DNA of 64,000 bases from Macrostomum lignano (taxonomy: Eukaryota). This document shows, one piece after another, positions 56,945 through 59,225 of this stretch. The notes beneath the pieces are model-generated. The model was given only the letters and a program-made list of their open reading frames with translations, did not search any database and was not told the origin of the DNA. The DNA is taken from contig NIVC01000043.1 in the NCBI GenBank assembly GCA_002269645.1, positions 62,001 through 126,000 on the forward strand. Reading direction: 5' to 3'. How positions within the stretch are numbered: the stretch's first letter is position 1; every line of letters starts with the position of its first letter. The position numbers and the translations under genes are program-made.

Positions 56945-59225
56945 TCACTCGCCGCCACCAATGAGATAGGCGGTCTGCTCAGCAGCCGAGGCGGCCAAGC
57001 CGCTGCAGTCCACCAGCAGTTGATTCAGCAAGCGATTATCGCCTACAAGTCGATTCCAAGACTCAAATCCTACGCGACGTTTGATAAGCGACAAGACTTG
57101 CAGAGTAGGCAATAACAGTCGGTGTCCGAGGCCAGCTTGGCTAGAGCAGGCCGAATTACCCAGACAAGCCTGACAAGCTGTCACTAAGCTTGGCAACTCG
57201 GCTAATTCCAAATCGCTAAGCTGGCCAGAATTTCTACGCAACTGATCGGCGGCTAAATTGAGCGCCAACTCTGACGAGCTGTTGTTGCTACTATTGGCGC
57301 CAAGCCAATTGGACGCGCAGGCGCCTAATCGAAGCAGCGCCGGACCGGCAAGCTCAGAGAGCGCCACCGGAGCCGATTCCAATCGGATCAAAGCGGCAGT
57401 CAAACTGGCAATAGCGGCTAGAAGATCGCCAACCTCTGACGAAGCTCGATGCCGATTAGTTAATTCGGCTAGTTGGCCAATCAATCTACAGGTGGCTTCT
57501 AATCCAATGAAATCTGGCAAATTCGTGGATAACAGATAGGCCGATCTGGCCGAGCAGCAGCGAAGTCCCCGAGCCAATTGGCCAGCTAATGAGCTCTGTT
57601 CTCCTGATAATCTGTCGGTTTTCTGCTGCCGTTGATCTATTGATGAAGCTAATTCCGCTAGCAATAGCGGATGCTGTGGAGTCAGCAGATTCGCCAGGTG
57701 CTGTTCATGAGGTTGATCAGCTATGTCGGCGGCGACGTCCTTCGAGGACGACGATGCGGCAGTAGTCGGAGTCAGGAAGGCGCGGTGCAGACAGCAGGCG
57801 GCGAAGAATGGCTGGCAAAGTGCCGGGTCGACGTGGCCTGCGGGCGGCGTCGGGAGGGGAGGAGAGGAAATAGTAGAAATGGACAGGGTGCCGTAGTGGT
57901 CCAGCGTGGCGCTCTGGTGTGCCAGCGGCCCAGGCTCGATTCCAAGTGCAGTCAAATTAATTGGGACTAAATTTAAATCTCGGCTTGGCTCTGCTCGTGC
58001 AATTAAAGCCCTTGATTGACAACCCCCAAGACACAGTGAAGTGTACATGTCTAACGATAAAGTTAGGGCCGCTGTACACTCCTGTGTGTGTACCTGCGCG
58101 TATGACTGCGTACGTATCCGCGCGCTTATGTGCCTGATCAGGGGAGTCGGGGCGGAATGGGCAGTAATGCCTCTCGCCGGTTGTGCGACAATGTCACTTG
58201 AAGTGCGCCAGAGCCAGCGTCATTTGCCTCTGATAAAAAAAGTAGAGGGAGGAGAGGAAGGAGAGAGGAGATAGAAGTGGAGGGAGAAGGAGAAGAAAAG
58301 GATAAAGGGAGAGGAAGAGGAGAGATGGAGAGATGAGAGAGAGAGAGAGAGAGAGATGAGAGAGAGAGAGAGAGAGAGAGAGAGAGAGAGAGAGAGAGAG
58401 AGAGAGAGAGAGAGAGAGAGAGAGAGAGAGAGAGAGAGAGAAAGAACGAGGGAAAGAGATAGGGAGAGGGGAGAATATACGCAAACAGAAATTTCCAGAC
58501 AGACGAAGCGACACAGAGAACAAAATTCTCAGTCATAGTCATCGGGGTGACCCGGTGCACCCACCAGCAGCCAGCCGGTCAGCGGCTCTCTGGCACAGGT
58601 TCCGCAGCAGCTCGACCGCAGCCGGCAGCCGATGGGTCATCAAATCGCGCAGCGCCCGACTCTGCGGCAGACAGCAGAGCCTGGCCAGCCGGGCAAGCGC
58701 CAGAACTCGCCAAGCCATCAAATCTTGTTGTTGATCGTCCTCGTCGGCAGCATCCGCAGACTTCAACTGCAGCAGGCAGGCGTCAAGCAAGCCCAGACGG
58801 ACCAGTCTGGCGCCGAGAGACACGCTGGCGCGGCAGCAGTTAACCAGAGCCGCTAGGCTTAACCGGCGCATCAAGCCGGAACCGGCGCCAACAACGTGGC
58901 CAATGCAGTAGGGCCCAGTCTGGCGAATCAATTCAGCGGTGCCAGACGCCCCGGGACTGCAGCGGGCAGTCAGCCGGAGCAGCAGGTAGGCAGCGGACAG
59001 GGCTTCGTTGGCCTGCCGACCGCCCAGGTGGCCGGCTAATTTGTAAGCGACGCCGTCGACGCTAGCAAAAGCGTCACAATCGGCCGCGCTGCGCAGTCGG
59101 GGCAGCAGTAGAGACACAAAAGAATATGCATGTTTATTATTATTATCATGATTATCGCAGAGGCGCTTGGCCCTTAGATACTCGCCAGCCGCTGCTAGGG
59201 CGTCGCTAACGTCAACGGTGGATGC
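56945..59225 (-). CDS. Armadillo/HEAT-repeat protein resembling the CIP2A N-terminal ARM domain; no genomic ATG (about 517 aa plus an initiator Met)
   Basis: Exons 59225-58565 and 57837-56945 (phase 1, GCT G/gtgggt..cccgcag/GC). AYLLLRLTARCSPGASG..IGHV..LMRRLSLAALVNCCRASVSL resembles CIP2A QLLQKLTYNVKIFYSG..IDHI..LKMPCLGLLANLCRHNLSV (from memory). In-frame TAA lies 4 codons upstream of the acceptor. Confidence 0.7.
57888..58235 (+). mobile_element. tRNA-headed SINE family B, copy 3
   Basis: A-box-like TAGTGGTCCAGCG, B-box-like GGCTCGATTCC, then CCCAAGACACAG..TGTACATGTCTAACGATAAAGTTAGGGCCGC..GCGGAATGGGCAG. Confidence 0.65.
58335..58442. repeat. (GA)n microsatellite
   Basis: Direct inspection. 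Confidence 0.98.

Follow-up and report, generated by a model that had tools for sequence, protein, structure and literature searches.

A Macrostomum lignano orphan gene that probably takes its start codon from the flatworm spliced leader

We describe an orphan gene of the flatworm Macrostomum lignano that lacks a start codon; its ATG is probably supplied by the flatworm spliced leader (SL), through SL trans-splicing at position 59225 in phase 0. A sequence-only reading of this DNA had proposed such an SL-donated start and had added that the resulting protein lines up with the N-terminus of CIP2A; the SL ATG in phase at 59225 stands as the best-supported explanation, whereas the CIP2A alignment found no support. 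Both the trans-splicing at 59225 and the use of the SL AUG as start are what we infer here, while the SL sequence and the capacity of flatworm SL AUGs to start translation are taken from the literature.

Results

Gene structure and splice acceptor

The gene lies on the minus strand of the window, which is the whole 64,000-nt stretch of contig NIVC01000043.1 that was analysed. Its full coding span, 56945-59225, is made up of two exons with 517 genome-encoded codons, and it belongs to the locus family Mlig007275. In contig coordinates, site 59225 is NIVC01000043.1:121225 (minus strand). The features of the region are listed below, with a slash marking splice points.

60020..60448, minus strand: C19orf12-like gene, upstream on the same strand (PF20721, E 6.9e-33)
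59840..59845, minus strand: AATAAA, likely poly(A) signal of the C19orf12-like gene
~59372..59655, minus strand: tRNA-derived SINE-like dispersed repeat in the presumed outron, with a second copy in the window
59226..59250, minus strand: predicted SL trans-splice acceptor, with a pyrimidine-rich tract, a CTAAT branch-like motif and CAG; tctcactttctaatcccgcccgcag/G
59238..59240, minus strand: in-frame TAA closing the frame, 4 codons upstream of exon 1
58565..59225, minus strand: coding exon 1, 661 nt; first codon GCA (Ala) in phase 0, donor G/GTGGGT in phase 1
58872..59225, minus strand: 118 sense codons without ATG, the N-terminal segment needing an external start codon
58869..58871, minus strand: first in-frame ATG, codon 119 (MRRLSLAAL...), within a predicted helix spanning residues 117-133
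57838..58564, minus strand: intron 1 of 727 nt, which contains a (CT)n microsatellite; acceptor cgcccgcag/GC
56945..57837, minus strand: coding exon 2, with the stop TGA at 56947-56945

Exon 1 spliced to exon 2 gives the NCBI protein PAA92617.1 at 100% identity. The intron measures 603, 727 and 739 nt across the three genomic copies of the gene, and beyond the 3' end of the gene (past 56945) a minisatellite is followed by the NDUFB10 gene.

Read directly, the minus strand at the acceptor runs ...ctcactttc TAA tcc cgc ccg cag/GCA TCC ACC GTT GAC, with the acceptor AG at 59227-59226 and the first base of exon 1 at 59225. Pyrimidines occupy 16 of the 20 bases that precede the acceptor CAG/G, and the CTAAT branch-like motif overlaps the TAA (59240-59238) that closes the frame. 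The earlier reading had pointed out both the acceptor and the frame closed four codons upstream of it, and the strand bears out both. The acceptor region has the same sequence in the two other genomic copies; the paralogous sites are on contigs NIVC01003107.1 and NIVC01002430.1. Its CCGCAG is a partial fit to [T/C]TNCAG, the published enriched M. lignano trans-acceptor motif (PMC8629364), with C, not T, at position -5.

M. lignano has a single SL, CGGTCTCTTACTGCGAAGACTCAATTTATTGCATG, of 35 nt (PMC8629364). It ends in ATG (...TTGCATG), so that the earlier statement that flatworm SLs end in AUG holds for this species. Between about 30 and 39% of M. lignano genes are trans-spliced (PMC8629364; PMC5730564), and the final ATG of the Macrostomum SL has been noted as a likely start codon (PMC10468722). 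When the SL ATG is placed before GCA TCC ACC..., the frame reads MASTVDV... in phase, with no stop before 56945.

The N-terminal segment without ATG

As had been noted from the sequence, the first in-frame ATG lies about 120 codons into the frame, at codon 119 (58871). The 118 codons before it look coding, as judged by a single open frame, codon usage and the absence of indels among the three copies. They form the only open frame of the six, each of the other five being interrupted by 2-11 stops. They score +0.9 bits in codon-usage log-likelihood; the other frames score -16 to -60 bits and flanking non-coding DNA, used as a control, -31 to -71 bits. Among the three copies, gaps fall in 0 of 1554 exon columns, compared with 76 gapped columns upstream and 165 in the intron, and codons 1-118 themselves carry no indels and 2.3% substitutions. 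The pN/pS of the whole CDS among the copies is 0.11-0.51; for codons 1-118 alone it is 0.18-1.09 on 1-4 changes per class, and because the copies are about 97-98% identical to each other and the changes few, neither the conservation of this segment nor its pN/pS can prove selection there.

These data bear on a competing explanation, that translation starts at Met119 (58871) and yields a 399-aa protein, the 354 nt upstream being a 5' UTR that is open by chance. A 399-codon ORF does follow this ATG, the older gene model A0A1I8FBY1 begins there, and 2.8% of mononucleotide shuffles stay open over 118 codons, so that a chance opening is not impossible. We nevertheless consider a start at Met119 unlikely, given that codon usage in frame 0 lies far above that of the other frames and the non-coding controls, and that indels, present in the non-coding flanks, are absent from the segment. 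Scanning to Met119 would also be hampered by two earlier ATGs that are out of frame, at nt 76 and nt 94. In a single-sequence AlphaFold model of low confidence, predicted helices are continuous from residue 6, five of them precede Met119, and Met119 itself sits inside a helix. Moreover, trans-splicing at 59225 would put the SL AUG first and in frame, so that the long protein would result in any case. The model A0A1I8FBY1 (P0002) is itself chimeric, with the orphan gene fused to NDUFB10 and Arf-like sequence.

That the frame is a decaying ORF, which has lost its start codon and makes no protein, we regard as extremely improbable. The protein has no homologue outside M. lignano, no Pfam domain and a poor structure prediction, as such a relic might. 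Against this, all three copies have an intact 517-codon frame free of indels, which abound in the intron and flanks, the pN/pS of the whole CDS and the retained splice sites speak for maintenance, and the RNA-seq-based annotation (PMC5730564) indicates that the gene is transcribed.

Upstream spacer and search for a cis exon

The stop of the C19orf12-like gene and the acceptor of the orphan gene are 794 nt apart, of which about 280 nt are occupied by the SINE. The sequence-only reading had described the 800 bp upstream as holding a SINE and the C19orf12 3' region, and this description is confirmed by the end of the PF20721 gene, the AATAAA at 59845 and the repeat. Neither ARAGORN nor Rfam called a tRNA in the SINE-like repeat at 59372-59655; its repeat nature is established by a second copy, found by BLAST at 7451-7232 with 88% identity over 237 nt, which carries an A box, GTAGCCTAGTGG, as well as a B box, GGTTCGATYCCCG. 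The annotated CDS of the C19orf12-like gene begins right after caacag/ at 60448, its own ATG lying at 60439, and its gene models start exactly at this acceptor in 3 of 3 copies. An SL ATG joined there would also be in frame, giving M-PAA-MLDP.

An unannotated upstream exon could in principle bring an ATG by ordinary cis-splicing, with 59226 as a cis acceptor. Our scan of 4.8 kb for phase-0 ATG..GT strings returned 86, mostly within minisatellites, and the candidates for an upstream exon were at chance level. Within the 794-nt intergenic stretch, the sole phase-0 candidate falls in the SINE; its donor, GTTGCA, is poor, and its ATG is deleted in copy L001. Two candidates further upstream combine phase 0 with an acceptable GT donor, namely the first four codons of the C19orf12-like gene (ATG CTA GAT CCG/GTAAAAGT, exon end 60428) and a mini-exon, ATG CGC CAT/GTAAGG, at 61450-61442. 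In addition, parasitic flatworms often use one acceptor for both cis- and trans-splicing (PMC12582326). However, the C19orf12 coding sequence contains the donor at 60428 and continues past it into the Pfam domain; the mini-exon at 61450 would require a 2.2-kb intron engulfing an entire same-strand gene; short ATG..GT strings of this kind are expected by chance at the density found; and an upstream exon is present in none of the three RNA-seq-based models. There is thus no credible upstream ATG exon for the orphan gene, and a cis-spliced start is improbable.

Annotated gene models

NCBI models of M. lignano derive from a pipeline of RNA-seq, TBONE and TransDecoder (PMC5730564); the RNA-seq sets behind the Mlig_3_7 annotation are SRP082513 and SRR2682326. 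The models of the three copies (PAA92617, PAA57942 and PAA53274) are all 5'-partial and have no upstream exon. Their starts lie at +24, +27 and +3 nt from the acceptor, respectively, and since these starts are ragged while those of the C19orf12-like models are exact, the published annotation may have had no SL-read peak at 59225. A missing peak could be explained by low expression but also by absent trans-splicing. Full-text and supplement searches for Mlig007275 gave no match, the protein cluster has no Logan or TSA member, and the SL-exon junction had no match in JGI metagenomes, a scan that is uninformative for M. lignano transcripts.

The ragged 5' ends, which do not fall exactly at the acceptor, would also suit an mRNA that is not trans-spliced, has its 5' end near 59225 and is translated from a non-AUG codon in exon 1, for which an in-frame GTG (codon 37) and CTGs (codons 40, 41 and 44) are available. 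We consider this very unlikely. It leaves unexplained why a consensus acceptor lies exactly at the start of the open frame, 12 nt past a stop, and why codons 1-36 look coding; the upstream DNA consists of 3' UTR and SINE with no obvious promoter, and initiation at SL AUGs is documented, whereas AUG-independent initiation is comparatively rare.

Identity of the protein

CIP2A is a protein of about 900 aa with an ARM domain and, C-terminal to it, a long coiled coil, and its N-terminal armadillo domain has a solved PDB structure. The orphan protein had been labelled "ARM/CIP2A-like" from its sequence, a label that could not be upheld, as Pfam, phmmer against the PDB, HMMER and Foldseek all gave no CIP2A match. 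No Pfam family was found at E<=1 (no ARM, HEAT or Peptidase_C50), and phmmer against all PDB chains returned nothing at E<=10. HMMER over 1.84 billion representatives revealed no homologue outside M. lignano apart from one match, P0008, an artefact that arises from translating a tandem repeat, and a word-indexed search of 5.8 billion proteins matched M. lignano only.

With no homologues found, no alignment depth could be obtained for structure prediction. The single-sequence AlphaFold model has a mean pLDDT of 41.8 and shows about 22 helices of 5-30 residues. With this low-confidence query, Foldseek against the PDB gave no match at E<=1e-3, neither CIP2A nor separase was among the top 50, and the weak matches were to generic helical-repeat proteins (CAND1, importins and beta-catenin) with TM<=0.28.

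CIP2A is also rejected on architecture, given that the orphan protein is 517 aa long, has no predicted helix of more than 30 residues and shows no long C-terminal coiled coil. Separase, the UniRef name of the fragments A0A1I8IWG6, A0A1I8HAJ8 and A0A1I8IU93, was rejected as well, there being no Pfam C50 domain and no PDB match, and the gene ending at 56945. The UniRef name "RAP domain-containing" was set aside, as no RAP domain was found. The product is best described as a lineage-restricted protein that is predicted to be all alpha-helical.

Discussion

Based on the anatomy of the locus and on what is published about the M. lignano SL, we propose the following probable sequence of steps, in which (i) the primary transcript would carry an outron composed of C19orf12-like 3' flanking sequence and the SINE; (ii) this outron would be removed by SL trans-splicing at the CAG/G acceptor 59226/59225; (iii) the 35-nt SL (...TTGCATG) would contribute the cap and, at its 3' end, an AUG that joins GCA in phase 0 and is the only initiator available; and (iv) translation would yield a product of 518 aa, M-ASTVDVSDALAAAGEYLRAK... 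The predicted transcript junction at 59225 would read ...TTATTGCATG joined to GCATCCACCGTTGAC or, equivalently, TTTATTGCATG/GCATCCACCGTTGAC. At the protein level, the long form would include the tryptic peptide ASTVDVSDALAAAGEYLR, derived from codons 1-118, and would begin with (Ac-)ASTVDV.

On the same strand, genes for an RRM protein, the C19orf12-like protein, the orphan protein, NDUFB10, an Arf-like protein and BCAS2 form an operon-like run, of which the orphan gene is a downstream member. In M. lignano, same-strand neighbours are classed as an operon when less than 1 kb, adjusted for repeats, separates them and the downstream gene is trans-spliced (PMC8629364; PMC5730564). The orphan gene has the same orientation as its upstream neighbour and lies at a repeat-adjusted distance of 794 nt less about 280 nt of SINE, the trans-splicing itself being the predicted element. 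Adding the SL ATG at the acceptors of this run would give M-PAA-MLDP for the C19orf12-like gene, M-ASTVD for the orphan gene, MQ* for NDUFB10 and M* for the Arf-like gene. These predicted fusions fit a picture in which acceptor-proximal sequence is tuned to the SL AUG. As a rule for Macrostomum we offer this tentatively, as a possibility that is rather doubtful at present: some genes may be obligately SL-dependent, while neighbours that have their own ATG are either in frame with the SL AUG or stopped at once. Genes resembling this one, having lost their start codon, would depend on trans-splicing, and SL addition would thus act as an on-switch. If the proposal is true, a 118-codon SL-dependent N-terminus in a lineage-specific gene would bear on how new operon genes gain translation starts.

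Should the SL start be confirmed, the "partial" models PAA92617, PAA57942 and PAA53274 would be complete once the SL methionine is added, and the gene would give M. lignano a clean case of an ORF that is untranslatable without trans-splicing. It could serve in mending annotation pipelines that drop or shorten SL-initiated ORFs, in transgene design in M. lignano, a species capable of transgenesis, and in asking how frequently genes residing in operons rely on the SL AUG. Our understanding of the SL-AUG mechanism as such is unchanged by this gene; the mechanism is already known from Schistosoma since 2006 and is suspected in Macrostomum.

The all-alpha-helical prediction would suit a helical-repeat protein, but no similarity to CIP2A or separase was detected in sequence or fold. 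The closest parallel at the level of initiation is the class of Schistosoma SL-AUG mRNAs (Cheng et al. 2006); in the accounts given in PMC9851317 and PMC12582326, more than 40 S. mansoni cDNAs need the SL AUG to initiate. As in that class, a flatworm SL ending in AUG would meet an in-frame acceptor, and N-terminal residues are encoded without a genomic ATG. In contrast to that class, the host belongs to the free-living Macrostomorpha, another flatworm lineage, the ATG-less stretch is long (118 codons), and the use of the SL AUG is deduced from genomic anatomy rather than from cDNA or reporter assays. The slORFs called by slORFfinder (PMC9851317) embody the same concept, with the SL giving the recipient ORF its start codon; they were called from SL-containing RNA-seq and ribosome footprints in a set that does not include Macrostomum. 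Finally, the locus resembles the M. lignano operons (Ustyantsev & Berezikov 2021, PMC8629364; Wudarski et al. 2017, PMC5730564) in its co-oriented neighbours, spaced by less than 1 kb, and in the repeat within the spacer, and differs from the enriched M. lignano YTNCAG in having CCGCAG as its acceptor.

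Results

Gene model and splice acceptor

The two-exon gene at 59225-56945 opens directly at a splice acceptor, the minus strand reading ttctcactttc TAA tcc cgc ccg cag/GCA TCC ACC GTT GAC, with pyrimidines at 16 of the 20 bases preceding the acceptor CAG and a CTAAT branch-like motif overlapping the TAA. The frame is open from 59225, which corresponds to position 121225 of record NIVC01000043.1 (assembly GCA_002269645.1), and no in-frame ATG occurs before codon 119 (58871; Met119). The sequence-only reading had described a closed frame, an acceptor and an ATG-less ORF at this place, and re-reading and translating the sequence confirmed all three. 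Once spliced, the gene encodes 517 aa, and NCBI PAA92617.1 is 100% identical to this product from residue 9 to the end.

Features of the gene and of the region upstream
59845, minus strand: AATAAA of the C19orf12-like 3' region, within the 794-nt upstream interval
~59655-59372, minus strand: dispersed repeat, within the same interval
59240-59238, minus strand: in-frame TAA before the acceptor, read from the sequence
59227-59226, minus strand: acceptor AG; the exon's first base is 59225
59225-58565, minus strand: exon 1, donor G/GTGGGT, phase 1
58564-57838, minus strand: intron with an internal (CT)n microsatellite, acceptor cgcccgcag/GC
57837-56945, minus strand: exon 2, terminating in TGA

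Two near-identical extra genomic copies, L001 on NIVC01003107.1 and L002 on NIVC01002430.1, are consistent with the partial genome duplication already described for the line that was sequenced. All copies share the same-strand order RRM protein, C19orf12-like, the gene under study, NDUFB10 and Arf/Ras-like GTPase, with a 928-aa gene upstream and BCAS2 downstream on the contig of the window itself. Large minisatellites (periods 23, 27, 21 and 24 nt; 33 to 85 copies) occupy the same-strand gene spacers at 53179-54136, 55410-56927, 60492-61178 and 61950-64000, and their lengths vary strongly from one genomic copy to another. The stop of the gene under study is separated from the NDUFB10 ATG by 1.1 kb in L001, by 2.1 kb in the window and by 4.9 kb in L002.

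A probable start codon from the spliced leader

M. lignano possesses a single 35-nt spliced leader (SL), CGGTCTCTTACTGCGAAGACTCAATTTATTGCATG, and about 30-39% of its genes are trans-spliced; operons are defined there as same-strand genes less than 1 kb apart (repeat-adjusted) with the downstream one trans-spliced, and repeat insertions are common in their spacers (PMC8629364; PMC5730564). The flatworm SL AUG can act as initiator methionine, a finding of Cheng et al. 2006 that PMC9851317, PMC12582326 and PMC5832876 restate, and the Macrostomum genome paper considers the final ATG of the SL a likely translation start codon (PMC10468722). Joined in silico to 59225, the SL yields TTGC ATG GCA TCC, that is M-A-S-T-V-D-V, in phase and with G at +4. 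Based on this phase and on SL AUG initiation in flatworms, we infer as the best, and a probable, explanation that SL trans-splicing would take place at 59226/59225 and that the SL AUG would start a 518-aa protein.

Across four adjacent genes of the window, the gene under study among them, predicted acceptors put the SL AUG either in the ORF frame or right before a stop. The C19orf12-like acceptor at 60449/60448 (minus strand), caacag/CCGGCAGCAATG, gives M-PAA-MLDP in frame, and the annotated CDS begins exactly there in the three copies. The predicted acceptors of NDUFB10 (54874/54873, minus strand; ctaatag/CAATAAAGGATG) and the Arf-like gene (51821/51820, minus strand; ctttcag/TAAATTTTCCCGATG) give MQ-stop and M-stop, respectively, each followed by the gene's own ATG, and the RRM gene, just past the window's end on the same contig, reads tttcag/ATG. 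This hints at acceptor-proximal sequence tuned to the SL AUG, which four genes cannot establish.

Elsewhere in the window, 2688-2722 (minus strand) holds a 35-nt near-copy of the SL, tAGTCgCTTACTGCGAAGACTCAATTTATTGaATG, with four mismatches, in AT-rich surroundings and with no downstream ORF. It is followed by AACCATC in place of a GT donor and is not an SL RNA gene; one possible origin is retroposition of the 5' end of an mRNA that had been trans-spliced.

Search for an upstream exon

The ATG could instead, though less probably, come from an unannotated cis exon. The interval from the C19orf12-like stop (60022-60020) to the acceptor measures 794 nt and contains, as previously noted, the C19orf12-like 3' region and a SINE. 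Neither ARAGORN nor Rfam called a tRNA in the repeat at about 59655-59372, but "tRNA-derived SINE" is a fair name, because tRNA-type A and B boxes are common to this repeat and a second copy at 7451-7232 (minus strand; 88% over 237 nt). The anticodon-arm region of that second copy is internally deleted, and the L001 version of the first lacks 30 bp. The C19orf12-like 3' flank also holds a telomere-like string, CTAACCCTAACCCT (59722-59735, minus strand), which reads as two TTAGGG units on the opposite strand and is kept in all three copies.

The sole phase-0 ATG..GT string of the interval (59427-59395) lies within the SINE, has the poor donor GTTGCA and has lost its ATG in L001; GTRAG donors at 59867 and 59323 are not accompanied by an in-phase ATG ORF. 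Farther upstream, theoretical phase-0 donors follow C19orf12-like codon 4 (GATCCG/GTAAAAGT, exon end 60428) and the 3-codon string ATGCGCCAT/GTAAGG (61450-61442), and no gene model uses either. The latter mini-exon would require a 2.2-kb intron enclosing an entire same-strand gene.

A cis-spliced upstream exon is likewise absent from all three RNA-seq-based NCBI models. The underlying Mlig_3_7 annotation assembled RNA-seq with StringTie and TACO, cut transcripts with TBONE where SL and poly(A) sites had been mapped by experiment, and called ORFs with TransDecoder (PMC5730564). All three NCBI proteins of the gene are flagged partial; the window copy starts 24 nt past the acceptor, L002 27 nt and L001 3 nt. 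Since a 5'-partial TransDecoder ORF requires a frame open to the first bases of the transcript, the assembled transcripts stop just inside exon 1, as expected if the true 5' end is an SL unmappable to the genome. In contrast to these ragged starts, the C19orf12-like models start precisely after caacag in all three copies, so the pipeline may have had no SL-read peak at the gene under study.

Coding character of codons 1-118

The ATG-less segment 59225-58872 appears to be coding, with four lines of evidence in favour and one, selection, undecided. Among its six frames, frame 0 alone is open (2-11 stops in each other), and only 2.8% of mononucleotide shuffles remain so. With a codon table trained on the remainder of the gene and the C19orf12-like CDS, codons 1-118 score +0.9 bits in frame 0 and -16 to -60 in the five other frames, and neighbouring non-coding DNA scores -31 to -71 bits.

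Comparison of the three genomic copies
Exons (1554 columns): 0 gapped columns; substitution columns 2.3% in codons 1-118, 1.6% in the rest of exon 1, 1.3% in exon 2
900 nt upstream: 76 gapped columns; 3.0% substitution columns
Intron: 165 gapped columns; 5.1% substitution columns

Translation might alternatively, though less probably, initiate at Met119. This start would need two out-of-frame ATGs ahead of it, at nt 76 and 94, to be bypassed; predicted helices run unbroken from residue 6 on and place Met119 within helix 117-133, secondary structure alone being used here because the 3D model is of low confidence. Non-AUG initiation and a dead gene are further, unlikely rivals. As a measure of selection, pN/pS is 0.11-0.51 over the whole CDS, and its range of 0.18-1.09 over codons 1-118, from just 1-4 changes per class, is indecisive.

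Protein identity

The label "ARM/CIP2A-like" proposed from the sequence rested on an N-terminal string and found no support in Pfam, PDB, sequence-database or Foldseek searches. The 517-aa protein matched no Pfam-A family at E≤1 and, with phmmer, no PDB chain at E≤10. A 5.8-billion-cluster search and full HMMER over 1.84 billion representatives returned M. lignano proteins alone, except P0008, a translated tandem repeat that we rejected. AlphaFold without alignment predicts an all-helical protein of about 22 helices at low confidence (pLDDT 41.8), and Foldseek with this model found nothing in the PDB at E≤1e-3; weak matches were to generic HEAT, ARM and TPR solenoids (TM≤0.28), with neither CIP2A nor separase in the top 50.

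Public names of older models of the gene look unfounded. The UniRef fragments named "Separase" (P0005-P0007; A0A1I8IWG6, A0A1I8HAJ8, A0A1I8IU93) carry no C50 domain, and the "RAP domain-containing protein" P0002 (A0A1I8FBY1) is a frameshifted chimera in which the gene is fused to NDUFB10 and Arf-like sequence. The most fitting description of the product is a predicted alpha-helical protein, rich in Ala and Leu, restricted to this lineage and of unassigned function.

Discussion

The three GenBank proteins flagged "partial" probably lack nothing but the SL-encoded Met, which gives the SL reading practical value for annotation. Both the SL-AUG mechanism and the required SL in M. lignano are already known. 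What our analysis adds is a single, likely instance in a free-living flatworm: an orphan gene whose SL-dependent N-terminus, at 118 codons, is unusually long.
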